From assembly GCA_047495785.1 (NCBI GenBank), contig JBLDXI010000073.1:124001-188000 (forward strand): a stretch of 64,000 bases of DNA. The letters are read 5' to 3'. Origin of the DNA: Lepidodermella squamata. Its lineage: Eukaryota; Animalia; Gastrotricha. A model generated the notes under the pieces. The model saw only the letters and a program-made list of their open reading frames with translations, did not search any database and had not been told where the DNA came from. Of this stretch, positions 1-30,800 are shown in pieces. Position 1 is the first letter of the stretch. Each line of letters starts with the position of its first letter. The translations under genes were made by a program, and so were the position numbers.

Positions 1-3000
1 CGAACAAGCTCGGCTCATTCACGTACCTTGTTGACCTGTGGCTCCATCAGCGCCTGAATGGTTTCACAAAACAAGAGAAATCGTAACCAAGAGCCTGGAT
101 CCTAGCTTCAAAGCTCACCTGTCGCTCCAGTAGCGCCCTGCCCACCCAGTGGGCCTTCGGAACCTTGCACGCCTTGGGGACCTTGCGAACCAAGCGGACC
201 TTGCGGGCCTGGAAATCACGAATAAATTCATGCAAGCTTCAAACCTCAACTTCGAAGATCGCAACTGTACCTTGAGAACCTAGCGGGCCCTGATCTCCGG
301 TTGCACCAGTCACTCCCGTCGCACCTGCAGCGGGGCAAAACCGAAGTAGCTCAAAGTTTCGAACAAGCTCGGCTCATTCACGTACCTTGTTGACCTGTGG
401 CTCCATCAGCGCCTGAATGGTTTCACAAAACAAGAGAAATCGTAACCAAGAGCCTGGATCCTAGCTTCAAAGCTCACCTGTCGCTCCAGTAGCGCCCTGC
501 CCACCCAGTGGGCCTTCGGAACCTTGCACGCCTTGGGGACCTTGCGAACCAAGCGGACCTTGCGGGCCTGAAAATCACGAATAAATTCATGCAAGCTTCA
601 AACCTCAACTTCGAAGATCGCAACTGTACCTTGAGAACCTAGCGGGCCCTGATCTCCGGTTGCACCAGTCACTCCCGTCGCACCTGCAGCGGGGCAAAAC
701 CGAAGTAGCTCAAAGTTTCGAACAAGCTCGGCTCATTCACGTACCTTGTTGACCTGTGGCTCCATCAGCGCCTGAATGGTTTCACAAAACAAGAGAAATC
801 GTAACCAAGAGCCTGGATCCTAGCTTCAAAGCTCACCTGTCGCTCCAGTAGCGCCCTGCCCACCCAGTGGGCCTTCGGAACCTTGCACGCCTTGGGGACC
901 TTGCGAACCAAGCGGACCTTGCGGGCCTGAAAATCACGAATAAATTCATGCAAGCTTCAAACCTCAACTTCGAAGATCGCAACTGTACCTTGAGAACCTA
1001 GCGGGCCCTGATCTCCGGTTGCACCAGTCACTCCCGTCGCACCTGCAGCGGGGCAAAACCGAAGTAGCTCAAAGTTTCGAACAAGCTCGGCTCATTCACG
1101 TACCTTGTTGACCTGTGGCTCCATCAGCGCCTGAATGGTTTCACAAAACAAGAGAAATCGTAACCAAGAGCCTGGATCCTAGCTTCAAAGCTCACCTGTC
1201 GCTCCAGTAGCGCCCTGCCCACCCAGTGGGCCTTCGGAACCTTGCACGCCTTGGGGACCTTGCGAACCAAGCGGACCTTGCGGGCCTGAAAATCACGAAT
1301 AAATTCATGCAAGCTTCAAACCTCAACTTCGAAGATCGCAACTGTACCTTGAGAACCTAGCGGGCCCTGATCTCCGGTTGCACCAGTCACTCCCGTCGCA
1401 CCTGCAGCGGGGCAAAACCGAAGTAGCTCAAAGTTTCGAACAAGCTCGGCTCATTCACGTACCTTGTTGACCTGTGGCTCCATCAGCGCCTGAATGGTTT
1501 CACAAAACAAGAGAAATCGTAACCAAGAGCCTGGATCCTAGCTTCAAAGCTCACCTGTCGCTCCAGTAGCGCCCTGCCCACCCAGTGGGCCTTCGGAACC
1601 TTGCACGCCTTGGGGACCTTGCGAACCAAGCGGACCTTGCGGGCCTGAAAATCACGAATAAATTCATGCAAGCTTCAAACCTCAACTTCGAAGATCGCAA
1701 CTGTACCTTGAGAACCTAGCGGGCCCTGATCTCCGGTTGCACCAGTCACTCCCGTCGCACCTGCAGCGGGGCAAAACCGAAGTAGCTCAAAGTTTCGAAC
1801 AAGCTCGGCTCATTCACGTACCTTGTTGACCTGTGGCTCCATCAGCGCCTGAATGGTTTCACAAAACAAGAGAAATCGTAACCAAGAGCCTGGATCCTAG
1901 CTTCAAAGCTCACCTGTCGCTCCAGTAGCGCCCTGCCCACCCAGTGGGCCTTCGGAACCTTGCACGCCTTGGGGACCTTGCGAACCAAGCGGACCTTGCG
2001 GGCCTGAAAATCACGAATAAATTCATGCAAGCTTCAAACCTCAACTTCGAAGATCGCAACTGTACCTTGAGAACCTAGCGGGCCCTGATCTCCGGTTGCA
2101 CCAGTCACTCCCGTCGCACCTGCAGCGGGGCAAAACCGAAGTAGCTCAAAGTTTCGAACAAGCTCGGCTCATTCACGTACCTTGTTGACCTGTGGCTCCA
2201 TCAGCGCCTGAATGGTTTCACAAAACAAGAGAAATCGTAACCAAGAGCCTGGATCCTAGCTTCAAAGCTCACCTGTCGCTCCAGTAGCGCCCTGCCCACC
2301 CAGTGGGCCTTCGGAACCTTGCACGCCTTGGGGACCTTGCGAACCAAGCGGACCTTGCGGGCCTGAAAATCACGAATAAATTCATGCAAGCTTCAAACCT
2401 CAACTTCGAAGATCGCAACTGTACCTTGAGAACCTAGCGGGCCCTGATCTCCGGTTGCACCAGTCACTCCCGTCGCACCTGCAGCGGGGCAAAACCGAAG
2501 TAGCTCAAAGTTTCGAACAAGCTCGGCTCATTCACGTACCTTGTTGACCTGTGGCTCCATCAGCGCCTGAATGGTTTCACAAAACAAGAGAAATCGTAAC
2601 CAAGAGCCTGGATCCTAGCTTCAAAGCTCACCTGTCGCTCCAGTAGCGCCCTGCCCACCCAGTGGGCCTTCGGAACCTTGCACGCCTTGGGGACCTTGCG
2701 AACCAAGCGGACCTTGCGGGCCTGAAAATCACGAATAAATTCATGCAAGCTTCAAACCTCAACTTCGAAGATCGCAACTGTACCTTGAGAACCTAGCGGG
2801 CCCTGATCTCCGGTTGCACCAGTCACTCCCGTCGCACCTGCAGCGGGGCAAAACCGAAGTAGCTCAAAGTTTCGAACAAGCTCGGCTCATTCACGTACCT
2901 TGTTGACCTGTGGCTCCATCAGCGCCTGAATGGTTTCACAAAACAAGAGAAATCGTAACCAAGAGCCTGGATCCTAGCTTCAAAGCTCACCTGTCGCTCC

Positions 3001-3520
3001 AGTAGCGCCCTGCCCACCCAGTGGGCCTTCGGAACCTTGCACGCCTTGGGGACCTTGCGAACCAAGCGGACCTTGCGGGCCTGAAAATCACGAATAAATT
3101 CATGCAAGCTTCAAACCTCAACTTCGAAGATCGCAACTGTACCTTGAGAACCTAGCGGGCCCTGATCTCCGGTTGCACCAGTCACTCCCGTCGCACCTGC
3201 AGCGGGGCAAAACCGAAGTAGCTCAAAGTTTCGAACAAGCTCGGCTCATTCACGTACCTTGTTGACCTGTGGCTCCATCAGCGCCTGAATGGTTTCACAA
3301 AACAAGAGAAATCGTAACCAAGAGCCTGGATCCTAGCTTCAAAGCTCACCTGTCGCTCCAGTAGCGCCCTGCCCACCCAGTGGGCCTTCGGAACCTTGCA
3401 CGCCTTGGGGACCTTGCGAACCAAGCGGACCTTGCGGGCCTGAAAATCACGAATAAATTCATGCAAGCTTCAAACCTCAACTTCGAAGATCGCAACTGTA
3501 CCTTGAGAACCTAGCGGGCC
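1..3520 (-). repeat. Tandem array of about 9.8 near-identical 359-bp units, each 3 exons (90+27+54 bp) and 3 introns (65+61+62 bp)
   Basis: ORF track recurs every 359 bp. Example exons 478-567, 386-412 and 271-324 are bounded by GT/AG on the minus strand and encode [57 protein letters not shown]. Confidence 0.95.
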
Positions 3521-5269
3521 TTGAGGACCCTGCGCGCCTATCGGACCTTGCGATCCCGAAAATAAGGAAATTACATAATTTTTGATATTTTTTGTGATGC
3601 TCACCTTGAAGACCTGGCAATCCTTGCAACCCTTGACTGCCTTGAGTACCTGTAATGTTTTTAAGTGGAAATGCTAATGCTATCTACATAGTCATTTTCC
3701 AGTAATTTCACCAGTAGGTCCTTGGACCCCAACGTCGCCTGAAAATAAGCAAGCTATGAATCTTTTCAAATAGAAGTTCAAGTCATACCGTTAGCTCCCT
3801 TGTCACCAGTAGTGCCAGTTGCACCTTTTGAATTCAAGTCACTTTTGTATTTAATTCCTCGACAATCCGCTTACCATTCGAACCCTTATCACCTGCTGCC
3901 CCGGTTGGACCAGTTGGTCCCGTTTTTCCCAATGTTCCTGAACAATAAACAAAGTTTTTAAGATTCAACTGAATTGAACATTATCCCACCCTTTGCGCCT
4001 TGAGTTCCTGTTGTACCAGTTTGCCCTGTCGCGCCGGTCGGTCCAGTTGGCCCTAGCCTCCCTAGATGAATAACACGTTAATTATAGATTGAGGCATAGT
4101 TCATAGCCTTGCCTTGAGCTCCTTGAGGTCCTAAAAGACGAAATACGAACATGATCACAAACATTATTTTTCCAGAACCAGCAACTTACCATTCGCACCT
4201 GGAAAATTCAGAAATTAAACTCAGAGTTTGTGAGTCCTGAAAACACTCACCTTGAACTCCAGGTAGACCTTGTTCTCCAACAGGACCCGTGGGTCCTGTA
4301 GGTCCAAAAGATCCAATGGGTCCTGTTGGACCAGTTGGACCCGTAGGACCCGTCGGCCCGGTCGGTGCGCTAACTACGTCTCGCACTAAAATTCAGAACA
4401 ATTAAGAAACATATTGATGACGGAAATATTTGTATAAATATGCCTCATCACTAGGTAGTTTAAGGACCGAATAGATGGGGAAAAATTATCGAAAAAGCTA
4501 TTGCAAACACGCTTTGATTTATATTCCGAATTTTGAAATTTGGCAATAAAATAAATTCTTCCCATGGTAAATCCCATGAGCCGAGCGCGCGTGTTCTCGG
4601 TCGCAAGATCAAGTCCGAAGACCAGTGAGAAATAATTGTAAAAATAAAAAAATTACAAATGAAAATTTATGAATGAATAAATAATAAACGATTCATTAAT
4701 TCATTAATTAAAATCATAAAAAATAAAAAACTATAAATTAAAACAAATAAAAAAAAAAAATCTGTGAGTATTTTTTCGGCTATGAATTGATCAGGAACCT
4801 TTGCGATTTCGCAGATTTTTATCAAAAATTTTTGAAATTTGAAAGATTCGATTTTTTGAATTTTTTCTAAAATTCGAAATCTGAATCCGAAATTGCAAAG
4901 AGGATTGAGGAGGAATTATTGCTGAAAGTTCTATGTCCAAATGCATTTTTCCTAATAGAGAGAATTTTTAAGAAATAATTAATTCACAACTTTTGGATAA
5001 ATAATTTCCGCCCTAACCACGCACATTTTTTAGGAAATTGGTTTTGAATATGGGTAATTTAAGAACAAATTCTTTTAATATACGATAAATTGAAAAGCAT
5101 GAAAAATTGGTTCCAAAAAATTACAATGAATTTGCTACTGTTTGATGGTTGATTTTCGAAATTTTCCGAAATTTTCAGTAGGAAATAAAATCTGGCGATA
5201 GTGAAACTGACCAGACAGAAGAACCATGACTGAGAGCAAACCGGTCGACTGCAATCTTCCCCCAACCAT
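1..5269 (-). CDS. Collagen-like gene 1 (5' part; 3' end lies outside the window), secreted, Gly-X-Y cassette array
   Basis: ATG at 5269. Exon 5212-5269 encodes [19 protein letters not shown] (signal-like). Phase-1 exons 4251-4385, 4190-4198, 4113-4130, 3990-4061, 3875-3937, 3789-3824, 3712-3738, 3605-3649 and 3502-3555 are followed by repeating 90/27/54-bp exons. All join into continuous Gly-X-Y. Confidence 0.85.
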
Positions 5270-6981
5270 TGTTGTACACAACCAAAAATGGACCAGATAA
5301 AAAAAAACGCCGGTAACAAATAACCTAAAGAAGCCACGACAGAATAATCGCCTATCGATGAATCGAAATTTAAACTATAATCAAAGTGTTAAATTGAGAA
5401 TTATAAAACGAACAGTCTTATAAGATGAACCGGACCCACATCATTAGCTGGTACAAGTCCGTGCTGTTCACTGTACCATTCCATCATCTCGGCCTTAATT
5501 ATCGCGATCACGAGACTGAGCTAAAATAATCGAGAATTTTTTTTATAATTTTATGAACCAACAACTTAGAGAAGCCTCATTCTACATATAAGTATGTTTA
5601 TCAAATCAGAATTTAAATCTGTGAATTTTTTCAAAACCTCAAGGATTTTAGCTGAGCACTTCGCTCTATCATAGCAACGCTCGCAAAGGGGTAAATCTCG
5701 ATGGTCGGGGTATGCATGCTTAGCCTTTGACTAGAGTTGTTTTACAGTTTTGGATTCAACGCTTGAATTGCGCCAACCGAAATAAGCGGTTCGAAAAATT
5801 GACTTTCGTTGACAGTCGAATTGACATGACATGACCCACAAAAAGTGTTGTAATGATTTACATCTATCGATCAATTTTGTATTTCATTGAAAGAATGCCG
5901 CTCAGTGTAAAACGGCAAGAGAGGTTACAACGTCTGTCCAAGCGGGTCGACAATCGCAAGAATCTAGTCAACGCGTTTATGTTCGATGCTGCCCAGCAGA
6001 TGATTATGAGATTAGGCGAAGGCCTATTCAAATTACCAGTGTTTGACGGTTGGCGGGGAACTCCCTTTAGATGAGCGTTGATTAAAAAGATCGAATTCGG
6101 CTCCGTGACTTTGTCCAGCCTTATTAGGTTGAAGACAATTACTTCACCGTATGCATTGACAAACTAATGACGCAACTGAAGGCTTGTTACTAAGCTTCAC
6201 TCACTTTGGGACAATAACTTTAAGGCTCAAGAGCACGAAAAAATTACATCGAGGAACAACCTGCGACGTGCCTCAACGATGAGGAATGCTAAATGGCCCA
6301 TTTCTCATACTCCCAAGAAATTTGGAGGAATTTCAGAGTTTCGATGCCTGTTACTCGTATTAAGCCAATCTTTTGCAATGCAAACCGGACAGGGTTGGAT
6401 GCAATAGAATTGTTCCTACTTGACAGCAACTCCCCACGACCAATTTTTTCCCTAGACTCAGCGAATGTCTCTACTTCACTCCAGTAAGGCTAGGAAACCA
6501 TCGTAATAGTTTTGCGAATGTTAGGCCGTGTTCAGGAGATGCACCAAAAGATCAACAGGGGCAGTGACTTGTCAACCCGATGTAGGCAAGTGTTACAATC
6601 CGGTCGTTGAAGCTTCGAACGGGTATCGAGTGAGATTGTTTTCCTCGTCAACGACATTTTGATTCCAGTCAAGCGTGACTAGTTTTACAACCTTGCAGTG
6701 TCTTGTCGGGTCTCAGTCAAATTCTGCTACTGCTACGACTCCGTTCATCCAACTCTAGTCAGCTGCAAGCCTGATATTGAGGGTTGCGAACCTTCGAAGC
6801 CCATAAGTTAAAGAGACTGGATTTTAACTAGACTAAACCTTGCTTTTCAGCCTCGAGAATTCCGGAATTTCTCAAGCTCAGCAACATGCGCCAACTTCAA
6901 TGCGGTTCGGGATTTTTGATAATCGTCGTGAATTATGCAACCTATTTTAGGCTCCGTGGCATCAATGTTTCAATCCAAGGG

Positions 6982-12887: not shown

Positions 12888-15800
12888 CTAAGCGTAGTTT
12901 GCCAGGCTTTCGAGCAGAATTTGTTGAACTGCGTTCCGGACTGTTTCGAGATCGAATGGGCCAGGAGGACCACGAGGGCCGGGAAGACCGATGCCGTTAC
13001 GACCAGCGGGACCAGAAGGACCAGCGGGACCAGTCGCGCCATCTCTACCAGAAGTACCAGGAAGGCCAACGCCAGTTGGACCAGGAAGGCCAACGCCAGT
13101 TGGACCAGGAAGGCCAACGCCAGTTGGACCAGGAAGGCCAACGCCAGTTGGACCAGTGGGACCAGTATCGCCGGCTCTTCCAGGGAGACCAACACCTGGT
13201 CGACCAGCAGAGCCCGTTGGGCCAGTCATGCCAATACCTGTCGGACCAGTAGGACCTGTGACACCATCCCTGCCATCTCGGCCAGCCGGACCAGCAGGGC
13301 CCATTGCGCCTGCAATACCGGTCGCACCATTGTTACCATTCCTACCGGTCGGACCAGTCGGACCAGTCACTCCTAGGTCACCTGAGAACACGTAAAATTA
13401 TTTTTAATAGTCAAAAGGCATTATCATCACCTTTCTGCCCCTTGTCTCCTTTAGGTGCCATATCTCCAGAAATGCCCTTGTCACCTAAAAACAAAAGGAA
13501 AGCACGCCATGAGACCATGATCTATCCGACGAAATTGGAAAAGATCCCTTGCGTACCGGCAATCATCGGACATTGATCGCAACTAAATAAAACTACGTTT
13601 TCCAACTCACCTTGCAGGCCTTGAGGACCTTGCGAACCAAGCGGACCTTGCGGGCCTGAAAATCACGAATAAATTCATGCAAGCTTCAAACCTCAACTTC
13701 GAAGATCGCAACTATACCTTGAGAACCTAGCGGGCCCTGATCTCCGGTTGCACCAGTCACTCCCGTCGCACCTGCAGCGGGGCAAAACCGAAGTAGCTCA
13801 AAGTTTCGAAGAAGCTCGGCTCATTCACGTACCTTGTTGACCTGTGGCTCCATCAGCGCCTGAATGGTTTCACAAAACAAGAGAAATCGTAACCAAGAGC
13901 CTGGATCCTAGCTTCAACGCTCACCTGTCGCTCCAGTAGCGCCCTGCCCACCCAGTGGGCCTTCGGAACCTTGCACGCCTTGGGGACCTTGAGCGCCAAC
14001 GACACCTTGCGGGCCTGAAAATCACGAATAAATTCATGCAAGCTTCAAACCTCAACTGCGAAGCTCAGAACTGTACCTTGAGAACCTAGCGGACCCTGTT
14101 CTCCAGTGGCACCAGTAACACCGGTCGCACCTGTAGCGGGGCGAAATCGGAACAAACGCCAGTTGAGAAGCTTGCTCTCGCTTCGAACCGAGCTCATTCA
14201 CGTACCTTGTTGACCTGTGGCTCCTTCAGCGCCTGCATGGTTTTACAAAACAAGAGAAATTCCAGTCAAGAGGCTTCATCATAGCTTCAATGCTCACCTG
14301 TCGATCCAGTAGGGCCTTGCGCACCCATGGGACCTTCGGAACCTGAAAGTGAGAGCAGAAATTTAGCATCCAGAATAATCGAATCTCGAAGCCCGAGATT
14401 CCCGAACTCACCAAGCACGCCTTGGGGACCTTGAGCGCCAACGACACCTTGCGGGCCTGAAAATCACGAATAAATTCATGCAAGCTTCAAACCTCAACTG
14501 CGAAGCTCAGAACTGTACCTTGAGAACCTAGCGGACCCTGTTCTCCAGTGGCACCAGGAACACCGGTCGCACCTGTAGCGGGGCGAAATCGGAACAAACG
14601 CCAGTTGAGAAGCTTGCTCTCGCTTCGAACCGAGCTCATTCACGTACCTTGTTGACCTGTGGCTCCTTCAGCGCCTGCATGGTTTTACAAAACAAGAGAA
14701 ATTCCAGTCAAGAGGCTTCATCATAGCTTCAATGCTCACCTGTCGATCCAGTAGGGCCTTGCGCACCCATGGGACCTTCGGAACCTGAAAGTGAGAGCAG
14801 AAAATTAGCATCCAGAATAATCGAATCTCGAAGCCCGAGATTCCCGAACTCACCAAGCACGCCTTGGGGACCTTGAGCGCCAACGACACCTTGCGGGCCT
14901 GAAAATCACGAATAAATTCATGCAAGCTTCAAACCTCAACTGCGAAGCTCAGAACTGTACCTTGAGAACCTAGCGGACCCTGTTCTCCAGTGGCACCAGT
15001 AACACCGGTCGCACCTGTAGCGGGGCGAAATCGGAACAAACGCCAGTTGAGAAGCTTGCTCTCGCTTCGAACCGAGCTCATTCACGTACCTTGTTGACCT
15101 GTGGCTCCTTCAGCGCCTGCATGGTTTTACAAAACAAGAGAAATTCCAGTCAAGAGGCTTCATCATAGCTTCAATGCTCACCTGTCGATCCAGTAGGGCC
15201 TTGCGCACCCATGGGACCTTCGGAACCTGAAAGTGAGAGCAGAAAATTAGCATCCAGAATAATCGAATCTCGAAACCCGAGATTCCCGAACTCACCAAGC
15301 ACGCCTTGGGGACCTTGAGCGCCAACGACACCTTGCGGGCCTGAAAATCACGAATAAATTCATGCAAGCTTCAAACCTCAACTGCGAAGCTCAGAACTGT
15401 ACCTTGAGAACCTAGCGGACCCTGTTCTCCAGTGGCACCAGGAACACCGGTCGCACCTGTAGCGGGGCGAAATCGGAACAAACGCCAGTTGAGAAGCTTG
15501 CTCTCGCTTCGAACCGAGCTCATTCACGTACCTTGTTGACCTGTGGCTCCTTCAGCGCCTGCATGGTTTTACAAAACAAGAGAAATTCCAGTCAAGAGGC
15601 TTCATCATAGCTTCAATGCTCACCTGTCGATCCAGTAGGGCCTTGCGCACCCATGGGACCTTCGGAACCTGAAAGTGAGAGCAGAAATTTAGCATCCAGA
15701 ATAATCGAATCTCGAAGCCCGAGATTCCCGAACTCACCAAGCACGCCTTGGGGACCTTGAGCGCCAACGACACCTTGCGGGCCTGAAAATCACGAATAAA

Positions 15801-18800
15801 TTCATGCAAGCTTCAAACCTCAACTGCGAAGCTCAGAACTGTACCTTGAGAACCTAGCGGACCCTGTTCTCCAGTGGCACCAGGAACACCGGTCGCACCT
15901 GTAGCGGGGCGAAATCGGAACAAACGCCAGTTGAGAAGCTTGCTCTCGCTTCGAACCGAGCTCATTCACGTACCTTGTTGACCTGTGGCTCCTTCAGCGC
16001 CTGCATGGTTTTACAAAACAAGAGAAATTCCAGTCAAGAGGCTTCATCATAGCTTCAATGCTCACCTGTCGATCCAGTAGGGCCTTGCGCACCCATGGGA
16101 CCTTCGGAACCTGAAAGTGAGAGCAGAAAATTAGCATCCAGAATAATCGAATCTCGAAGCCCGAGATTCCCGAACTCACCAAGCACGCCTTGGGGACCTT
16201 GAGCGCCAACGACACCTTGCGGGCCTGAAAATCACGAATAAATTCATGCAAGCTTCAAACCTCAACTGCGAAGCTCAGAACTGTACCTTGAGAACCTAGC
16301 GGACCCTGTTCTCCAGTGGCACCAGTAACACCGGTCGCACCTGTAGCGGGGCGAAATCGGAACAAACGCCAGTTGAGAAGCTTGCTCTCGCTTCGAACCG
16401 AGCTCATTCACGTACCTTGTTGACCTGTGGCTCCTTCAGCGCCTGCATGGTTTTACAAAACAAGAGAAATTCCAGTCAAGAGGCTTCATCATAGCTTCAA
16501 TGCTCACCTGTCGATCCAGTAGGGCCTTGCGCACCCATGGGACCTTCGGAACCTGAAAGTGAGAGCAGAAAATTAGCATCCAGAATAATCGAATCTCGAA
16601 ACCCGAGATTCCCGAACTCACCAAGCACGCCTTGGGGACCTTGAGCGCCAACGACACCTTGCGGGCCTGAAAATCACGAATAAATTCATGCAAGCTTCAA
16701 ACCTCAACTGCGAAGCTCAGAACTGTACCTTGAGAACCTAGCGGACCCTGTTCTCCAGTGGCACCAGTAACACCGGTCGCACCTGTAGCGGGGCGAAATC
16801 GGAACAAACGCCAGTTGAGAAGCTTGCTCTCGCTTCGAACCGAGCTCATTCACGTACCTTGTTGACCTGTGGCTCCTTCAGCGCCTGCATGGTTTTACAA
16901 AACAAGAGAAATTCCAGTCAAGAGGCTTCATCATAGCTTCAATGCTCACCTGTCGATCCAGTAGGGCCTTGCGCACCCATGGGACCTTCGGAACCTGAAA
17001 GTGAGAGCAGAAAATTAGCATCCAGAATAATCGAATCTCGAAGCCCGAGATTCCCGAACTCACCAAGCACGCCTTGGGGACCTTGAGCGCCAACGACACC
17101 TTGCGGGCCTGAAAATCACGAATAAATTCATGCAAGCTTCAAACCTCAACTGCGAAGCTCAGAACTGTACCTTGAGAACCTAGCGGACCCTGTTCTCCAG
17201 TGGCACCAGTAACACCGGTCGCACCTGTAGCGGGGCGAAATCGGAACAAACGCCAGTTGAGAAGCTTGCTCTCGCTTCGAACCGAGCTCATTCACGTACC
17301 TTGTTGACCTGTGGCTCCTTCAGCGCCTGCATGGTTTTACAAAACAAGAGAAATTCCAGTCAAGAGGCTTCATCATAGCTTCAATGCTCACCTGTCGATC
17401 CAGTAGGGCCTTGCGCACCCATGGGACCTTCGGAACCTGAAAGTGAGAGCAGAAATTTAGCATCCAGAATAATCGAATCTCGAAGCCCGAGATTCCCGAA
17501 CTCACCAAGCACGCCTTGGGGACCTTGAGCGCCAACGACACCTTGCGGGCCTGAAAATCACGAATAAATTCATGCAAGCTTCAAACCTCAACTGCGAAGC
17601 TCAGAACTGTACCTTGAGAACCTAGCGGACCCTGTTCTCCAGTGGCACCAGTAACACCGGTCGCACCTGTAGCGGGGCGAAATCGGAACAAACGCCAGTT
17701 GAGAAGCTTGCTCTCGCTTCGAACCGAGCTCATTCACGTACCTTGTTGACCTGTGGCTCCTTCAGCGCCTGCATGGTTTTACAAAACAAGAGAAATTCCA
17801 GTCAAGAGGCTTCATCATAGCTTCAATGCTCACCTGTCGATCCAGTAGGGCCTTGCGCACCCATGGGACCTTCGGAACCTGAAAGTGAGAGCAGAAAATT
17901 AGCATCCAGAATAATCGAATCTCGAAGCCCGAGATTCCCGAACTCACCAAGCACGCCTTGGGGACCTTGAGCGCCAACGACACCTTGCGGGCCTGAAAAT
18001 CACGAATAAATTCATGCAAGCTTCAAACCTCAACTGCGAAGCTCAGAACTGTACCTTGAGAACCTAGCGGACCCTGTTCTCCAGTGGCACCAGTAACACC
18101 GGTCGCACCTGTAGCGGGGCGAAATCGGAACAAACGCCAGTTGAGAAGCTTGCTCTCGCTTCGAACCGAGCTCATTCACGTACCTTGTTGACCTGTGGCT
18201 CCTTCAGCGCCTGCATGGTTTTACAAAACAAGAGAAATTCCAGTCAAGAGGCTTCATCATAGCTTCAATGCTCACCTGTCGATCCAGTAGGGCCTTGCGC
18301 ACCCATGGGACCTTCGGAACCTGAAAGTGAGAGCAGAAAATTAGCATCCAGAATAATCGAATCTCGAAGCCCGAGATTCCCGAACTCACCAAGCACGCCT
18401 TGGGGACCTTGAGCGCCAACGACACCTTGCGGGCCTGAAAATCACGAATAAATTCATGCAAGCTTCAAACCTCAACTGCGAAGCTCAGAACTGTACCTTG
18501 AGAACCTAGCGGACCCTGTTCTCCAGTGGCACCAGTAACACCGGTCGCACCTGTAGCGGGGCGAAATCGGAACAAACGCCAGTTGAGAAGCTTGCTCTCG
18601 CTTCGAACCGAGCTCATTCACGTACCTTGTTGACCTGTGGCTCCTTCAGCGCCTGCATGGTTTTACAAAACAAGAGAAATTCCAGTCAAGAGGCTTCATC
18701 ATAGCTTCAATGCTCACCTGTCGATCCAGTAGGGCCTTGCGCACCCATGGGACCTTCGGAACCTGAAAGTGAGAGCAGAAAATTAGCATCCAGAATAATC

Positions 18801-21800
18801 GAATCTCGAAGCCCGAGATTCCCGAACTCACCAAGCACGCCTTGGGGACCTTGAGCGCCAACGACACCTTGCGGGCCTGAAAATCACGAATAAATTCATG
18901 CAAGCTTCAAACCTCAACTGCGAAGCTCAGAACTGTACCTTGAGAACCTAGCGGACCCTGTTCTCCAGTGGCACCAGTAACACCGGTCGCACCTGTAGCG
19001 GGGCGAAATCGGAACAAACGCCAGTTGAGAAGCTTGCTCTCGCTTCGAACCGAGCTCATTCACGTACCTTGTTGACCTGTGGCTCCTTCAGCGCCTGCAT
19101 GGTTTTACAAAACAAGAGAAATTCCAGTCAAGAGGCTTCATCATAGCTTCAATGCTCACCTGTCGATCCAGTAGGGCCTTGCGCACCCATGGGACCTTCG
19201 GAACCTGAAAGTGAGAGCAGAAAATTAGCATCCAGAATAATCGAATCTCGAAGCCCGAGATTCCCGAACTCACCAAGCACGCCTTGGGGACCTTGAGCGC
19301 CAACGACACCTTGCGGGCCTGAAAATCACGAATAAATTCATGCAAGCTTCAAACCTCAACTGCGAAGCTCAGAACTGTACCTTGAGAACCTAGCGGACCC
19401 TGTTCTCCAGTGGCACCAGTAACACCGGTCGCACCTGTAGCGGGGCGAAATCGGAACAAACGCCAGTTGAGAAGCTTGCTCTCGCTTCGAACCGAGCTCA
19501 TTCACGTACCTTGTTGACCTGTGGCTCCTTCAGCGCCTGCATGGTTTTACAAAACAAGAGAAATTCCAGTCAAGAGGCTTCATCATAGCTTCAATGCTCA
19601 CCTGTCGATCCAGTAGGGCCTTGCGCACCCATGGGACCTTCGGAACCTGAAAGTGAGAGCAGAAAATTAGCATCCAGAATAATCGAATCTCGAAGCCCGA
19701 GATTCCCGAACTCACCAAGCACGCCTTGGGGACCTTGAGCGCCAACGACACCTTGCGGGCCTGAAAATCACGAATAAATTCATGCAAGCTTCAAACCTCA
19801 ACTGCGAAGCTCAGAACTGTACCTTGAGAACCTAGCGGACCCTGTTCTCCAGTGGCACCAGTAACACCGGTCGCACCTGTAGCGGGGCGAAATCGGAACA
19901 AACGCCAGTTGAGAAGCTTGCTCTCGCTTCGAACCGAGCTCATTCACGTACCTTGTTGACCTGTGGCTCCTTCAGCGCCTGCATGGTTTTACAAAACAAG
20001 AGAAATTCCAGTCAAGAGGCTTCATCATAGCTTCAATGCTCACCTGTCGATCCAGTAGGGCCTTGCGCACCCATGGGACCTTCGGAACCTGAAAGTGAGA
20101 GCAGAAAATTAGCATCCAGAATAATCGAATCTCGAAGCCCGAGATTCCCGAACTCACCAAGCACGCCTTGGGGACCTTGAGCGCCAACGACACCTTGCGG
20201 GCCTGAAAATCACGAATAAATTCATGCAAGCTTCAAACCTCAACTGCGAAGCTCAGAACTGTACCTTGAGAACCTAGCGGACCCTGTTCTCCAGTGGCAC
20301 CAGTAACACCGGTCGCACCTGTAGCGGGGCGAAATCGGAACAAACGCCAGTTGAGAAGCTTGCTCTCGCTTCGAACCGAGCTCATTCACGTACCTTGTTG
20401 ACCTGTGGCTCCTTCAGCGCCTGCATGGTTTTACAAAACAAGAGAAATTCCAGTCAAGAGGCTTCATCATAGCTTCAATGCTCACCTGTCGATCCAGTAG
20501 GGCCTTGCGCACCCATGGGACCTTCGGAACCTGAAAGTGAGAGCAGAAAATTAGCATCCAGAATAATCGAATCTCGAAGCCCGAGATTCCCGAACTCACC
20601 AAGCACGCCTTGGGGACCTTGAGCGCCAACGACACCTTGCGGGCCTGAAAATCACGAATAAATTCATGCAAGCTTCAAACCTCAACTGCGAAGCTCAGAA
20701 CTGTACCTTGAGAACCTAGCGGACCCTGTTCTCCAGTGGCACCAGTAACACCGGTCGCACCTGTAGCGGGGCGAAATCGGAACAAACGCCAGTTAAGAAG
20801 CTTGCTCTCGCTTCGAACCGAGCTCATTCACGTACCTTGTTGACCTGTGGCTCCTTCAGCGCCTGCATGGTTTTACAAAACAAGAGAAATTCCAGTCAAG
20901 AGGCTTCATCATAGCTTCAATGCTCACCTGTCGATCCAGTAGGGCCTTGCGCACCCATGGGACCTTCGGAACCTGAAAGTGAGAGCAGAAAATTAGCATC
21001 CAGAATAATCGAATCTCGAAGCCCGAGATTCCCGAACTCACCAAGCACGCCTTGGGGACCTTGAGCGCCAACGACACCTTGCGGGCCTGAAAATCACGAA
21101 TAAATTCATGCAAGCTTCAAACCTCAACTGCGAAGCTCAGAACTGTACCTTGAGAACCTAGCGGACCCTGTTCTCCAGTGGCACCAGTAACACCGGTCGC
21201 ACCTGTAGCGGGGCGAAATCGGAACAAACGCCAGTTGAGAAGCTTGCTCTCGCTTCGAACCGAGCTCATTCACGTACCTTGTTGACCTGTGGCTCCTTCA
21301 GCGCCTGCATGGTTTTACAAAACAAGAGAAATTCCAGTCAAGAGGCTTCATCATAGCTTCAATGCTCACCTGTCGATCCAGTAGGGCCTTGCGCACCCAT
21401 GGGACCTTCGGAACCTGAAAGTGAGAGCAGAAAATTAGCATCCAGAATAATCGAATCTCGAAGCCCGAGATTCCCGAACTCACCAAGCACGCCTTGGGGA
21501 CCTTGAGCGCCAACGACACCTTGCGGGCCTGAAAATCACGAATAAATTCATGCAAGCTTCAAACCTCAACTGCGAAGCTCAGAACTGTACCTTGAGAACC
21601 TAGCGGACCCTGTTCTCCAGTGGCACCAGTAACACCGGTCGCACCTGTAGCGGGGCGAAATCGGAACAAACGCCAGTTGAGAAGCTTGCTCTCGCTTCGA
21701 ACCGAGCTCATTCACGTACCTTGTTGACCTGTGGCTCCTTCAGCGCCTGCATGGTTTTACAAAACAAGAGAAATTCCAGTCAAGAGGCTTCATCATAGCT

Positions 21801-24800
21801 TCAATGCTCACCTGTCGATCCAGTAGGGCCTTGCGCACCCATGGGACCTTCGGAACCTGAAAGTGAGAGCAGAAAATTAGCATCCAGAATAATCGAATCT
21901 CGAAGCCCGAGATTCCCGAACTCACCAAGCACGCCTTGGGGACCTTGAGCGCCAACGACACCTTGCGGGCCTGAAAATCACGAATAAATTCATGCAAGCT
22001 TCAAACCTCAACTGCGAAGCTCAGAACTGTACCTTGAGAACCTAGCGGACCCTGTTCTCCAGTGGCACCAGTAACACCGGTCGCACCTGTAGCGGGGCGA
22101 AATCGGAACAAACGCCAGTTGAGAAGCTTGCTCTCGCTTCGAACCGAGCTCATTCACGTACCTTGTTGACCTGTGGCTCCTTCAGCGCCTGCATGGTTTT
22201 ACAAAACAAGAGAAATTCCAGTCAAGAGGCTTCATCATAGCTTCAATGCTCACCTGTCGATCCAGTAGGGCCTTGCGCACCCATGGGACCTTCGGAACCT
22301 GAAAGTGAGAGCAGAAATTTAGCATCCAGAATAATCGAATCTCGAAGCCCGAGATTCCCGAACTCACCAAGCACGCCTTGGGGACCTTGAGCGCCAACGA
22401 CACCTTGCGGGCCTGAAAATCACGAATAAATTCATGCAAGCTTCAAACCTCAACTGCGAAGCTCAGAACTGTACCTTGAGAACCTAGCGGACCCTGTTCT
22501 CCAGTGGCACCAGTAACACCGGTCGCACCTGTAGCGGGGCGAAATCGGAACAAACGCCAGTTGAGAAGCTTGCTCTCGCTTCGAACCGAGCTCATTCACG
22601 TACCTTGTTGACCTGTGGCTCCTTCAGCGCCTGCATGGTTTTACAAAACAAGAGAAATTCCAGTCAAGAGGCTTCATCATAGCTTCAATGCTCACCTGTC
22701 GATCCAGTAGGGCCTTGCGCACCCATGGGACCTTCGGAACCTGAAAGTGAGAGCAGAAATTTAGCATCCAGAATAATCGAATCTCGAAGCCCGAGATTCC
22801 CGAACTCACCAAGCACGCCTTGGGGACCTTGAGCGCCAACGACACCTTGCGGGCCTGAAAATCACGAATAAATTCATGCAAGCTTCAAACCTCAACTGCG
22901 AAGCTCAGAACTGTACCTTGAGAACCTAGCGGACCCTGTTCTCCAGTGGCACCAGTAACACCGGTCGCACCTGTAGCGGGGCGAAATCGGAACAAACGCC
23001 AGTTAAGAAGCTTGCTCTCGCTTCGAACCGAGCTCATTCACGTACCTTGTTGACCTGTGGCTCCTTCAGCGCCTGCATGGTTTTACAAAACAAGAGAAAT
23101 TCCAGTCAAGAGGCTTCATCATAGCTTCAATGCTCACCTGTCGATCCAGTAGGGCCTTGCGCACCCATGGGACCTTCGGAACCTGAAAGTGAGAGCAGAA
23201 AATTAGCATCCAGAATAATCGAATCTCGAAGCCCGAGATTCCCGAACTCACCAAGCACGCCTTGGGGACCTTGAGCGCCAACGACACCTTGCGGGCCTGA
23301 AAATCACGAATAAATTCATGCAAGCTTCAAACCTCAACTGCGAAGCTCAGAACTGTACCTTGAGAACCTAGCGGACCCTGTTCTCCAGTGGCACCAGTAA
23401 CACCGGTCGCACCTGTAGCGGGGCGAAATCGGAACAAACGCCAGTTGAGAAGCTTGCTCTCGCTTCGAACCGAGCTCATTCACGTACCTTGTTGACCTGT
23501 GGCTCCTTCAGCGCCTGCATGGTTTTACAAAACAAGAGAAATTCCAGTCAAGAGGCTTCATCATAGCTTCAATGCTCACCTGTCGATCCAGTAGGGCCTT
23601 GCGCACCCATGGGACCTTCGGAACCTGAAAGTGAGAGCAGAAAATTAGCATCCAGAATAATCGAATCTCGAAGCCCGAGATTCCCGAACTCACCAAGCAC
23701 GCCTTGGGGACCTTGAGCGCCAACGACACCTTGCGGGCCTGAAAATCACGAATAAATTCATGCAAGCTTCAAACCTCAACTGCGAAGCTCAGAACTGTAC
23801 CTTGAGAACCTAGCGGACCCTGTTCTCCAGTGGCACCAGTAACACCGGTCGCACCTGTAGCGGGGCGAAATCGGAACAAACGCCAGTTGAGAAGCTTGCT
23901 CTCGCTTCGAACCGAGCTCATTCACGTACCTTGTTGACCTGTGGCTCCTTCAGCGCCTGCATGGTTTTACAAAACAAGAGAAATTCCAGTCAAGAGGCTT
24001 CATCATAGCTTCAATGCTCACCTGTCGATCCAGTAGGGCCTTGCGCACCCATGGGACCTTCGGAACCTGAAAGTGAGAGCAGAAAATTAGCATCCAGAAT
24101 AATCGAATCTCGAAGCCCGAGATTCCCGAACTCACCAAGCACGCCTTGGGGACCTTGAGCGCCAACGACACCTTGCGGGCCTGAAAATCACGAATAAATT
24201 CATGCAAGCTTCAAACCTCAACTGCGAAGCTCAGAACTGTACCTTGAGAACCTAGCGGACCCTGTTCTCCAGTGGCACCAGTAACACCGGTCGCACCTGT
24301 AGCGGGGCGAAATCGGAACAAACGCCAGTTGAGAAGCTTGCTCTCGCTTCGAACCGAGCTCATTCACGTACCTTGTTGACCTGTGGCTCCTTCAGCGCCT
24401 GCATGGTTTTACAAAACAAGAGAAATTCCAGTCAAGAGGCTTCATCATAGCTTCAATGCTCACCTGTCGATCCAGTAGGGCCTTGCGCACCCATGGGACC
24501 TTCGGAACCTGAAAGTGAGAGCAGAAAATTAGCATCCAGAATAATCGAATCTCGAAGCCCGAGATTCCCGAACTCACCAAGCACGCCTTGGGGACCTTGA
24601 GCGCCAACGACACCTTGCGGGCCTGAAAATCACGAATAAATTCATGCAAGCTTCAAACCTCAACTGCGAAGCTCAGAACTGTACCTTGAGAACCTAGCGG
24701 ACCCTGTTCTCCAGTGGCACCAGTAACACCGGTCGCACCTGTAGCGGGGCGAAATCGGAACAAACGCCAGTTGAGAAGCTTGCTCTCGCTTCGAACCGAG

Positions 24801-27800
24801 CTCATTCACGTACCTTGTTGACCTGTGGCTCCTTCAGCGCCTGCATGGTTTTACAAAACAAGAGAAATTCCAGTCAAGAGGCTTCATCATAGCTTCAATG
24901 CTCACCTGTCGATCCAGTAGGGCCTTGCGCACCCATGGGACCTTCGGAACCTGAAAGTGAGAGCAGAAAATTAGCATCCAGAATAATCGAATCTCGAAGC
25001 CCGAGATTCCCGAACTCACCAAGCACGCCTTGGGGACCTTGAGCGCCAACGACACCTTGCGGGCCTGAAAATCACGAATAAATTCATGCAAGCTTCAAAC
25101 CTCAACTGCGAAGCTCAGAACTGTACCTTGAGAACCTAGCGGACCCTGTTCTCCAGTGGCACCAGTAACACCGGTCGCACCTGTAGCGGGGCGAAATCGG
25201 AACAAACGCCAGTTGAGAAGCTTGCTCTCGCTTCGAACCGAGCTCATTCACGTACCTTGTTGACCTGTGGCTCCTTCAGCGCCTGCATGGTTTTACAAAA
25301 CAAGAGAAATTCCAGTCAAGAGGCTTCATCATAGCTTCAATGCTCACCTGTCGATCCAGTAGGGCCTTGCGCACCCATGGGACCTTCGGAACCTGAAAGT
25401 GAGAGCAGAAAATTAGCATCCAGAATAATCGAATCTCGAAGCCCGAGATTCCCGAACTCACCAAGCACGCCTTGGGGACCTTGAGCGCCAACGACACCTT
25501 GCGGGCCTGAAAATCACGAATAAATTCATGCAAGCTTCAAACCTCAACTGCGAAGCTCAGAACTGTACCTTGAGAACCTAGCGGACCCTGTTCTCCAGTG
25601 GCACCAGTAACACCGGTCGCACCTGTAGCGGGGCGAAATCGGAACAAACGCCAGTTGAGAAGCTTGCTCTCGCTTCGAACCGAGCTCATTCACGTACCTT
25701 GTTGACCTGTGGCTCCTTCAGCGCCTGCATGGTTTTACAAAACAAGAGAAATTCCAGTCAAGAGGCTTCATCATAGCTTCAATGCTCACCTGTCGATCCA
25801 GTAGGGCCTTGCGCACCCATGGGACCTTCGGAACCTGAAAGTGAGAGCAGAAAATTAGCATCCAGAATAATCGAATCTCGAAGCCCGAGATTCCCGAACT
25901 CACCAAGCACGCCTTGGGGACCTTGAGCGCCAACGACACCTTGCGGGCCTGAAAATCACGAATAAATTCATGCAAGCTTCAAACCTCAACTGCGAAGCTC
26001 AGAACTGTACCTTGAGAACCTAGCGGACCCTGTTCTCCAGTGGCACCAGTAACACCGGTCGCACCTGTAGCGGGGCGAAATCGGAACAAACGCCAGTTGA
26101 GAAGCTTGCTCTCGCTTCGAACCGAGCTCATTCACGTACCTTGTTGACCTGTGGCTCCTTCAGCGCCTGCATGGTTTTACAAAACAAGAGAAATTCCAGT
26201 CAAGAGGCTTCATCATAGCTTCAATGCTCACCTGTCGATCCAGTAGGGCCTTGCGCACCCATGGGACCTTCGGAACCTGAAAGTGAGAGCAGAAAATTAG
26301 CATCCAGAATAATCGAATCTCGAAGCCCGAGATTCCCGAACTCACCAAGCACGCCTTGGGGACCTTGAGCGCCAACGACACCTTGCGGGCCTGAAAATCA
26401 CGAATAAATTCATGCAAGCTTCAAACCTCAACTGCGAAGCTCAGAACTGTACCTTGAGAACCTAGCGGACCCTGTTCTCCAGTGGCACCAGTAACACCGG
26501 TCGCACCTGTAGCGGGGCGAAATCGGAACAAACGCCAGTTGAGAAGCTTGCTCTCGCTTCGAACCGAGCTCATTCACGTACCTTGTTGACCTGTGGCTCC
26601 TTCAGCGCCTGCATGGTTTTACAAAACAAGAGAAATTCCAGTCAAGAGGCTTCATCATAGCTTCAATGCTCACCTGTCGATCCAGTAGGGCCTTGCGCAC
26701 CCATGGGACCTTCGGAACCTGAAAGTGAGAGCAGAAAATTAGCATCCAGAATAATCGAATCTCGAAGCCCGAGATTCCCGAACTCACCAAGCACGCCTTG
26801 GGGACCTTGAGCGCCAACGACACCTTGCGGGCCTGAAAATCACGAATAAATTCATGCAAGCTTCAAACCTCAACTGCGAAGCTCAGAACTGTACCTTGAG
26901 AACCTAGCGGACCCTGTTCTCCAGTGGCACCAGTAACACCGGTCGCACCTGTAGCGGGGCGAAATCGGAACAAACGCCAGTTGAGAAGCTTGCTCTCGCT
27001 TCGAACCGAGCTCATTCACGTACCTTGTTGACCTGTGGCTCCTTCAGCGCCTGCATGGTTTTACAAAACAAGAGAAATTCCAGTCAAGAGGCTTCATCAT
27101 AGCTTCAATGCTCACCTGTCGATCCAGTAGGGCCTTGCGCACCCATGGGACCTTCGGAACCTGAAAGTGAGAGCAGAAAATTAGCATCCAGAATAATCGA
27201 ATCTCGAAGCCCGAGATTCCCGAACTCACCAAGCACGCCTTGGGGACCTTGAGCGCCAACGACACCTTGCGGGCCTGAAAATCACGAATAAATTCATGCA
27301 AGCTTCAAACCTCAACTGCGAAGCTCAGAACTGTACCTTGAGAACCTAGCGGACCCTGTTCTCCAGTGGCACCAGTAACACCGGTCGCACCTGTAGCGGG
27401 GCGAAATCGGAACAAACGCCAGTTGAGAAGCTTGCTCTCGCTTCGAACCGAGCTCATTCACGTACCTTGTTGACCTGTGGCTCCTTCAGCGCCTGCATGG
27501 TTTTACAAAACAAGAGAAATTCCAGTCAAGAGGCTTCATCATAGCTTCAATGCTCACCTGTCGATCCAGTAGGGCCTTGCGCACCCATGGGACCTTCGGA
27601 ACCTGAAAGTGAGAGCAGAAAATTAGCATCCAGAATAATCGAATCTCGAAGCCCGTGATTCCCGAACTCACCAAGCACGCCTTGGGGACCTTGAGCGCCA
27701 ACGACACCTTGCGGGCCTGAAAATCACGAATAAATTCATGCAAGCTTCAAACCTCAACTGCGAAGCTCAGAACTGTACCTTGAGAACCTAGCGGACCCTG

Positions 27801-30800
27801 TTCTCCAGTGGCACCAGGAACACCGGTCGCACCTGTAGCGGGGCGAAATCGGAACAAACGCCAGTTGAGAAGCTTGCTCTCGCTTCGAACCGAGCTCATT
27901 CACGTACCTTGTTGACCTGTGGCTCCTTCAGCGCCTGCATGGTTTTACAAAACAAGAGAAATTCCAGTCAAGAGGCTTCATCATAGCTTCAATGCTCACC
28001 TGTCGATCCAGTAGGGCCTTGCGCACCCATGGGACCTTCGGAACCTGAAAGTGAGAGCAGAAATATAGCATCCAGAATAATCGAATCTCGAAGCCCGAGA
28101 TTCCCGAACTCACCAAGCACGCCTTGGGGACCTTGAGCGCCAACGACACCTTGCGGGCCTGAAAATCACGAATAAATTCATGCAAGCTTCAAACCTCAAC
28201 TGCGAAGCTCAGAACTGTACCTTGAGAACCTAGCGGACCCTGTTCTCCAGTGGCACCAGTAACACCGGTCGCACCTGTAGCGGGGCGAAATCGGAACAAA
28301 CGCCAGTTGAGAAGCTTGCTCTCGCTTCGAACCGAGCTCATTCACGTACCTTGTTGACCTGTGGCTCCTTCAGCGCCTGCATGGTTTTACAAAACAAGAG
28401 AAATTCCAGTCAAGAGGCTTCATCATAGCTTCAATGCTCACCTGTCGATCCAGTAGGGCCTTGCGCACCCATGGGACCTTCGGAACCTGAAAGTGAGAGC
28501 AGAAAATTAGCATCCAGAATAATCGAATCTCGAAGCCCGAGATTCCCGAACTCACCAAGCACGCCTTGGGGACCTTGAGCGCCAACGACACCTTGCGGGC
28601 CTGAAAATCACGAATAAATTCATGCAAGCTTCAAACCTCAACTGCGAAGCTCAGAACTGTACCTTGAGAACCTAGCGGACCCTGTTCTCCAGTGGCACCA
28701 GTAACACCGGTCGCACCTGTAGCGGGGCGAAATCGGAACAAACGCCAGTTGAGAAGCTTGCTCTCGCTTCGAACCGAGCTCATTCACGTACCTTGTTGAC
28801 CTGTGGCTCCTTCAGCGCCTGCATGGTTTTACAAAACAAGAGAAATTCCAGTCAAGAGGCTTCATCATAGCTTCAATGCTCACCTGTCGATCCAGTAGGG
28901 CCTTGCGCACCCATGGGACCTTCGGAACCTGAAAGTGAGAGCAGAAAATTAGCATCCAGAATAATCGAATCTCGAAGCCCGAGATTCCCGAACTCACCAA
29001 GCACGCCTTGGGGACCTTGAGCGCCAACGACACCTTGCGGGCCTGAAAATCACGAATAAATTCATGCAAGCTTCAAACCTCAACTGCGAAGCTCAGAACT
29101 GTACCTTGAGAACCTAGCGGACCCTGTTCTCCAGTGGCACCAGTAACACCGGTCGCACCTGTAGCGGGGCGAAATCGGAACAAACGCCAGTTGAGAAGCT
29201 TGCTCTCGCTTCGAACCGAGCTCATTCACGTACCTTGTTGACCTGTGGCTCCTTCAGCGCCTGCATGGTTTTACAAAACAAGAGAAATTCCAGTCAAGAG
29301 GCTTCATCATAGCTTCAATGCTCACCTGTCGATCCAGTAGGGCCTTGCGCACCCATGGGACCTTCGGAACCTGAAAGTGAGAGCAGAAATTTAGCATCCA
29401 GAATAATCGAATCTCGAAGCCCGAGATTCCCGAACTCACCAAGCACGCCTTGGGGACCTTGAGCGCCAACGACACCTTGCGGGCCTGAAAATCACGAATA
29501 AATTCATGCAAGCTTCAAACCTCAACTGCGAAGCTCAGAACTGTACCTTGAGAACCTAGCGGACCCTGTTCTCCAGTGGCACCAGTAACACCGGTCGCAC
29601 CTGTAGCGGGGCGAAATCGGAACAAACGCCAGTTGAGAAGCTTGCTCTCGCTTCGAACCGAGCTCATTCACGTACCTTGTTGACCTGTGGCTCCTTCAGC
29701 GCCTGCATGGTTTTACAAAACAAGAGAAATTCCAGTCAAGAGGCTTCATCATAGCTTCAATGCTCACCTGTCGATCCAGTAGGGCCTTGCGCACCCATGG
29801 GACCTTCGGAACCTGAAAGTGAGAGCAGAAAATTAGCATCCAGAATAATCGAATCTCGAAGCCCGAGATTCCCGAACTCACCAAGCACGCCTTGGGGACC
29901 TTGAGCGCCAACGACACCTTGCGGGCCTGAAAATCACGAATAAATTCATGCAAGCTTCAAACCTCAACTGCGAAGCTCAGAACTGTACCTTGAGAACCTA
30001 GCGGACCCTGTTCTCCAGTGGCACCAGTAACACCGGTCGCACCTGTAGCGGGGCGAAATCGGAACAAACGCCAGTTGAGAAGCTTGCTCTCGCTTCGAAC
30101 CGAGCTCATTCACGTACCTTGTTGACCTGTGGCTCCTTCAGCGCCTGCATGGTTTTACAAAACAAGAGAAATTCCAGTCAAGAGGCTTCATCATAGCTTC
30201 AATGCTCACCTGTCGATCCAGTAGGGCCTTGCGCACCCATGGGACCTTCGGAACCTGAAAGTGAGAGCAGAAAATTAGCATCCAGAATAATCGAATCTCG
30301 AAGCCCGAGATTCCCGAACTCACCAAGCACGCCTTGGGGACCTTGAGCGCCAACGACACCTTGCGGGCCTGAAAATCACGAATAAATTCATGCAAGCTTC
30401 AAACCTCAACTGCGAAGCTCAGAACTGTACCTTGAGAACCTAGCGGACCCTGTTCTCCAGTGGCACCAGTAACACCGGTCGCACCTGTAGCGGGGCGAAA
30501 TCGGAACAAACGCCAGTTGAGAAGCTTGCTCTCGCTTCGAACCGAGCTCATTCACGTACCTTGTTGACCTGTGGCTCCTTCAGCGCCTGCATGGTTTTAC
30601 AAAACAAGAGAAATTCCAGTCAAGAGGCTTCATCATAGCTTCAATGCTCACCTGTCGATCCAGTAGGGCCTTGCGCACCCATGGGACCTTCGGAACCTGA
30701 AAGTGAGAGCAGAAATTTAGCATCCAGAATAATCGAATCTCGAAGCCCGAGATTCCCGAACTCACCAAGCACGCCTTGGGGACCTTGAGCGCCAACGACA

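Follow-up and report, generated by a model that had tools for sequence, protein, structure and literature searches.

A single, precisely placed intron distinguishes the amplified exon-intron cassettes of two tandem collagen genes in Lepidodermella squamata

Two paralogous collagen genes, here called A and B, lie in tandem on the minus strand of the window analyzed in this study, a stretch of 64,000 nucleotides from the 121-Mb, short-intron genome of the gastrotrich L. squamata. Each gene contains an array of nearly identical exon-intron cassettes, and the two cassette types differ at the same codon position by the presence or absence of one 69-nt intron (i69): all 38 units of the 442-bp type (alpha) carry it, and none of the 46 units of the 359-bp type (beta) does. 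These uniform states, together with the near identity of the copies, support the proposal of an earlier sequence-only reading of this DNA that a single event was spread to every unit by amplification. With regard to the direction of that event, we consider that i69 is probably ancestral and was precisely lost in the 359-bp lineage, and we favor this interpretation over a gain.

Results

The coordinates of the two genes, together with one example copy of each cassette segment, are given in Table 1. The signal-peptide exon of gene B is homologous to that of gene A, and the lead mini-exons of both genes are collinear, but the N-terminal domain exon of gene A, which comprises 271 codons, has no counterpart in gene B. 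The last lead exon of gene A already has an E54-like end. The last exon of the gene matches the Pfam family Collagen (PF01391; E value of 1.1e-12, 47.9 bits against a cut-off of 27.2), and the cassette exons are read strictly as Gly-X-Y. The lead region of both genes has kept an apparent 9-nt micro-exon and a GC-AG intron (5' site GCAAGG) after an 18-nt exon, located at 31601-31609 and 31522-31523 in gene A and near 4190-4200 and 4100 in gene B. In the intergenic DNA of the window, about 11 degenerate telomere-type repeats (ACCCTA) form an interstitial tract at 39172-39238.

Table 1. Coordinates of the collagen genes A and B, of example cassette segments, and of the related cassette copy outside the window (window coordinates unless a locus is named)
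Feature	Position	Strand	Remark
Gene A	33779->12888	minus	stop codon at 12888
Gene A, 5' part	30811..33779	minus	signal-peptide exon (near 33779), N-terminal domain exon (33006-32194), lead collagen mini-exons
Gene A, alpha array	14015..30810	minus	38 units of 442 bp, 17 kb
E45a, first half-exon (example copy)	14456-14412	minus	
i69, 69-nt phase-1 GT-AG intron (example copy)	14411-14343	minus	38 copies at 442-bp spacing, 5' ends 30765 ... 14411
E45b, second half-exon (example copy)	14342-14298	minus	
i65 (example copy)	14297-14233	minus	
E27 (example copy)	14232-14206	minus	
i75 (example copy)	14205-14131	minus	
E54 (example copy)	14130-14077	minus	
i62 (example copy)	14076-14015	minus	
Beta-type relic unit in gene A	14014-13656	minus	full unit, plus beta-like terminal exon
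Hybrid fused 90-nt exon, gene A	13925..14014	minus	5' part alpha E45a, 3' part beta E45b, no intron
Remainder of beta relic in gene A	13656..13924	minus	i65, E27, 61-nt intron, E54, i62
Terminal lone E45a, gene A	13611..13655	minus	ends at the i69 site
Terminal intron of gene A (iT_A)	13485..13610	minus	126 nt, starts gtgagtt, same site as i69
Gene A, C-terminal exons	12888..13484	minus	54-nt exon 13484-13431 and last exon 13381-12888 with stop codon
Gene B	~5270 to beyond window base 1	minus	46 units of 359 bp in all
Gene B, 5' part	3440..5270	minus	signal-peptide exon and lead mini-exons, no N-terminal domain exon
Gene B, beta array	1..3439 inside the window	minus	extends 13 kb further, beyond base 1, as far as window coordinate about -13100 (loci L035 and L036)
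Fused 90-nt exon of beta unit (example)	567-478	minus	
C61 cassette copy with adjoining tract	L032:4520-5010 = G000:C61:127519-128009		

The alpha unit, for which the copy at 14456->14015 on the minus strand serves as the example, is composed of exons of 45, 45, 27, and 54 nt and introns of 69, 65, 75, and 62 nt; the beta unit is composed of exons of 90, 27, and 54 nt and introns of 65, 61, and 62 nt. All cassette introns in both types are of the GT-AG type and in phase 1, each interrupting a Gly codon between its first and second bases. The difference of 83 bp in unit length is the sum of the 69 nt of i69 and of 14 nt, the latter being the net result of a complex indel inside the 75/61-nt intron. 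The split of 45 + 45 nt against a fused 90-nt exon and the 83-bp difference had been described in the sequence-only reading, and every coordinate and number given there was borne out. We counted 38 instances of the intron-bearing junction motif and 46 of the fused junction, 45 of the latter being in gene B and one in gene A.

Within each array the identity is 99.5 to 100%, and the exact copy numbers are therefore assembly-dependent. Across the 38 alpha copies 6 columns are variable, 4 of which are within i69, and across 45 copies of the beta unit 14 columns are variable. The alpha and beta consensus sequences are 82 to 96% identical, segment by segment, with values of 82 to 94% for the cassette introns overall (94% for i62) and 83 to 84% for the two half-exons. 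Between the cassette types, intron conservation thus equals or exceeds exon conservation, for example, in i62 (14015-14076), which suggests either a fast change of the collagen sequence or patchy conversion. It is also worth mentioning that the coding sequence of the last lead exon at 30925-30945, just upstream of its E54-like part, bears some resemblance to the last ~10 nt of the 75-nt intron (e.g., 14131-14142). From this slight resemblance, the array may have been founded by a duplication whose junction is now the 75-nt intron, the 3' splice site of which would then derive from exon sequence.

i69 carries a GTGAGT 5' splice site, a CTCAC branch-like motif, a pyrimidine run, and a TTTCAG 3' end. 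When it is excised in silico, the frame stays intact and each unit reads as 19 unbroken Gly-X-Y triplets, in the same register as the fused 90-nt exon of the paralog. We infer from these signals that i69 is spliced and is most likely an ordinary short U2-type GT-AG spliceosomal intron. The hairpin that had been reported in it is present, with 8-bp arms and a 5-nt loop, as an internal inverted repeat at intron positions 11-31, and a perfect 8-bp hairpin was found in only 0.3% of i69 shuffles (P of about 0.003). For the intron as a whole, folding prediction gives a different minimum-energy structure (−21 to −22 kcal/mol, z of −2.6), with GUGAG of the 5' splice site paired to CUCAC close to the 3' end.

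The two arrays end alike. In gene A, a 45-nt exon at the terminus (13655-13611) ends at the i69 site and is then followed by gtgagtt, in agreement with the earlier description. Gene B has the same arrangement: an E45a standing alone (L036, about 6900-6874, minus strand), with 18 nt missing through a deletion between direct repeats, closes the array and precedes a 145-nt intron at the identical site. The exon after this terminal intron is homologous to the 54-nt exon 13484-13431 of gene A. The fact that both arrays end in the first half-exon followed by an intron at the i69 site indicates that this structure predates the split of genes A and B. The terminal introns of the two genes could not be aligned with each other, and neither of them showed significant similarity to i69 beyond the first 7 nt.

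Near their 3' ends, the arrays also contain sequences of each other's type. The beta relic in gene A has 98.7% identity to the consensus of the gene B array, and reciprocally, an alpha relic in gene B has 99.6% identity to the alpha consensus. The last unit of gene B is 387 bp long and contains a nonhomologous junction inside i65 at which beta sequence passes into alpha sequence. At this junction (L036:7140-7165, minus strand), about 14 extra nt lie inside the 65-nt intron, and the junction is a recombination scar at the edge of the alpha relic. In the hybrid exon of gene A, the switch point between the two types is located within a 19-nt stretch that is identical in both. The hybrid exon is direct evidence for the removal of i69 from an alpha unit by recombination with an intron-less paralogous unit. 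Together, the hybrid exon and the reciprocal relics show exchange between paralogs A and B. A comparison of introns points the same way: the lead introns of genes A and B are roughly 65 to 70% identical, as judged by eye in the alignment, compared with the 82 to 94% of the cassette introns, so that the arrays share a more recent ancestor than the genes that contain them.

One further copy of the cassette was found outside the window, at C61. This copy spans about 1.06 units of alpha-like cassette, including both exons and introns (L032:4520-4990), and is alpha-like over most of its length (95%). Its i69 shows 82% identity over 60 matching nt, with both hairpin arms intact and the 3' splice site lost. 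The second half-exon differs from that of alpha at 9 of 45 positions; about half of these differences are synonymous, and Gly is always kept. This pattern suggests descent of the copy from a third unit variant that was functional and likewise contained i69, and the intron thus existed in at least two diverged unit types. The copy sits alone in an intron of ~650 nt of a kinase-ankyrin gene on the opposite strand, and a degenerate TTAGGG tract lies directly after it; it looks like a piece of an array that was captured, through break repair or by way of a circular intermediate, and to which telomere repeats were joined.

The sequence-only reading had also proposed a genome-wide check of i69 for introner-like copies. 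A search of this kind at E<=10 matched only the 38 array copies and one further place, C61:127838-127897, and revealed no dispersed copies. Whole-unit DNA searches of the genome likewise returned the C61 fragment as the only additional match. An introner or introner-like element was rejected as the source of i69, since the sole extra copy is a cassette fragment with its flanking exons, and since i69 possesses neither terminal inverted repeats nor a target-site duplication, the shared ends being only AG/GT. Aligned locally with the remainder of the unit in both orientations, i69 scored no better than shuffles did, which argues against an origin by tandem duplication as modeled previously (PMC3265369; PMC4974935). 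The birth of i69 by tandem duplication of an AGGT-containing exon segment is likewise not supported, as the intron has no likeness to the adjacent exon sequence.

Searches for relatives gave few matches. With the N-terminal exon of gene A as the query, a word search gave no match and an exhaustive representative search gave a best match of 34% identity, and no relative exceeded this value across the libraries searched. The C-terminal exon yielded generic collagen-like matches only, and no close protein or transcript of gene A was found with single-exon queries in the libraries searched. A metagenome protein scan and a metagenome DNA pattern scan for an outgroup were both blank. Within the genome, the C-terminal exon is common to genes A and B only, and the N-terminal domain occurs elsewhere only at C34:456172-456855 (33% identity), in a gene for a short collagen with large exons and no cassette. 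A metagenomic eukaryote contig (ENA ERZ27333047 k141_386085; L041:10001-12414) encodes a 30%-identical N-terminal domain followed by collagen. The arrangement of domain plus collagen is the same in this relative, and the C-terminal tail is similar; its collagen exons are large, it has no cassette, and it indicates that the domain-plus-collagen family exists outside this genome.

Discussion

We suggest that the ancestral cassette carried i69 after E45a and that its precise loss took place in the founder of the beta unit. The likely route of this loss would be a deletion between the AG/GT microhomologies at the ends of the small intron; alternatively, a spliced template would have been copied. 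Unequal crossing-over and gene conversion would then have multiplied and homogenized the alpha unit 38-fold in gene A and the beta unit 46-fold in gene B. Exchange or conversion of units between the two genes would still be ongoing at the 3' ends of the arrays, and one such exchange erased i69 from an alpha unit, leaving the hybrid exon 14014-13925. Taken as a whole, an ancestral intron, its precise loss in the beta founder, and subsequent amplification and conversion are in our judgment the best explanation of the locus, and we hold it with moderate confidence.

The sequence-only reading had leaned weakly toward loss in the 359-bp type on the basis of the terminal exon of gene A. This lean is strengthened, although not proven, by the terminus of gene B, by the C61 copy, and by the fact that no source for i69 was found elsewhere in the genome or in the unit. 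The consensus of the beta unit contains 7 unoccupied AG/G phase-1 sites, so that a later insertion would match the i69 site by chance in about 1 case in 7. In animals, small introns with microhomology at their junctions are preferentially lost (PMC3698931), and in duplicated genes intron loss outnumbers gain (PMC1779517). There are also arguments against a loss. No outgroup or third close paralog was found, and the direction is accordingly argued from the internal logic of the locus only. The terminal introns match i69 in position, a match that is not backed by sequence similarity beyond 7 nt, and AG/G microhomology is common to all cassette introns, so that this feature does not single out i69. 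If the alpha unit and the C61 copy belong to one clade, as they may, a single gain would suffice, and the large collagen exons of the distant family members at C34 and L041 mean that the A/B lineage may have gained introns.

A gain is, in our view, the less likely alternative. According to this explanation, the fused 90-nt exon would be ancestral, and 69 nt of filler DNA with a hairpin would have entered an AG/GT proto-splice site in alpha and been multiplied 38 times; as part of the same scenario, the inserted 69 nt would have been spliced from the start, and the hairpin would be of the kind that break repair can leave. The site is indeed a perfect proto-splice site (CAAG/GT in beta), but it is only one of ~7, and a coincidence would be needed for the new intron to appear at the very site where both arrays already end with an intron. 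The perfect 8-bp hairpin is unusual, as would fit filler DNA, but the genome holds neither a donor sequence nor dispersed copies, and the similarity to the flanking exon that is required by a tandem-duplication origin (PMC3265369) is lacking. A gain would also be in line with the small number of introns in the collagen part of the distant relatives and with the confinement of i69 to alpha-type sequences, namely, alpha and the C61 copy; however, the i69 of the latter is already 18% diverged, and the intron is hence not very young. We consequently prefer an ancestral i69 that was lost in the beta lineage.

It is very unlikely that i69 is not an obligatory intron and that its 23 codons are retained, always or facultatively, as a 23-residue break of the triple helix in each repeat. 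The frame of i69 is open in 38 of 38 copies, whereas the other three cassette introns have stops or a frameshift, but about 40% of shuffles are expected to have an open frame of this length, and one length in three is divisible by 3, giving a chance of about 0.13. The first nine codons of i69 read Gly-X-Y three times, yet the variation among the alpha units, with 4 of the 6 variable sites falling within i69, is as expected if the intron is unconstrained, and the paralog does without the 69 nt. The stable predicted fold, in which the 5' splice site pairs with the branch-like motif, could modulate splicing, although the splice signals are near-perfect. More improbable still is the special case in which i69 would be a facultative "exitron" whose regulated retention could insert a 23-residue nonhelical hinge at any of 38 places. 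If this were true, the protein would switch from a rigid collagen rod without breaks to a segmented, flexible form and back, and the paralog without i69 would be fixed in the rigid form.

Hardly any weight can be given to an assembly artifact, in which the arrays or their uniformity would stem from collapsed or mis-joined near-identical repeats, for although units that are at least 99.5% identical over 17 kb are hard to assemble and one 357-bp unit is distinct only by its homopolymer lengths, the flanks are unique, the hybrid boundary units differ by type, scattered private variants occur in a fixed order, and the difference in intron state is independent of copy number.

Fibrillar collagen genes contain amplified short Gly-X-Y exon units of 54, 45, and 27 nt, among other lengths. 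The exons found here, of 27, 45, 54, and 90 nt, are likewise multiples of 9, and in both cases the helix domain comes from exon-unit duplication. The two systems differ in other respects. In vertebrate fibrillar collagen genes the exons start with a whole Gly codon, whereas the introns described here split the Gly codon in phase 1. Moreover, the copies at this locus are almost identical, introns included, unlike those of fibrillar collagen genes, which indicates that the amplification is recent.

Iterated, homogenized introns, with differences between paralogs and intergenic conversion, have been described in the flagelliform and Argiope MaSp2 spidroin genes of spiders (Baker, Corvelo and Hayashi 2022, PMC9779670). 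The arrays of genes A and B fit this iterated and homogenized cassette architecture, since both tandem near-identical units and exchange between paralogs were found. As in the spidroins, a single gene holds tandem exon-intron cassettes whose introns are almost the same from copy to copy and about as conserved as the exons or more so, and the paralogs, between which there is evidence of conversion, differ in the repeated introns that they carry (PMC9779670). However, the product here is a collagen rather than a silk and is known from sequence alone, each cassette has four (or three) introns of different sequence, and the paralogs differ by one precise intron at an otherwise identical site.

The locus can also be compared with known modes of intron loss and gain. 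It resembles cases of microhomology-mediated intron loss (van Schendel and Tijsterman 2013, PMC3698931) in the small size of the intron, in AG/GT at both junctions, and in the scarless absence from a close paralog; it differs from them in that direction and mechanism are inferred here and in that the intron-less state would later have been multiplied 46 times. With introners and introns born by tandem duplication (Hellsten et al. 2011, PMC3265369; PMC4974935), it shares the many near-identical introns and the AG/GT site. Unlike in these systems, the copies of i69, apart from the one in the C61 fragment, are all confined to a single tandem array, where they were amplified along with the neighboring exons, and i69 shows no dispersed copies, terminal repeats, or likeness to the neighboring exon.

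Arrays of this kind are thus already known, and the locus opens no new class of mechanism. What it adds is one precise intron difference multiplied 38-fold, together with a hybrid unit that documents the erasure of an intron. A single intron gain or loss can shift the intron count of a gene by dozens through cassette amplification, and a genome may contain many near-identical introns that are not introners. The hybrid exon illustrates how recombination between paralogs can erase an intron, and the pair formed by genes A and B provides a built-in comparison within a collagen family, in which the same repeat occurs with and without an in-frame, structured intron.
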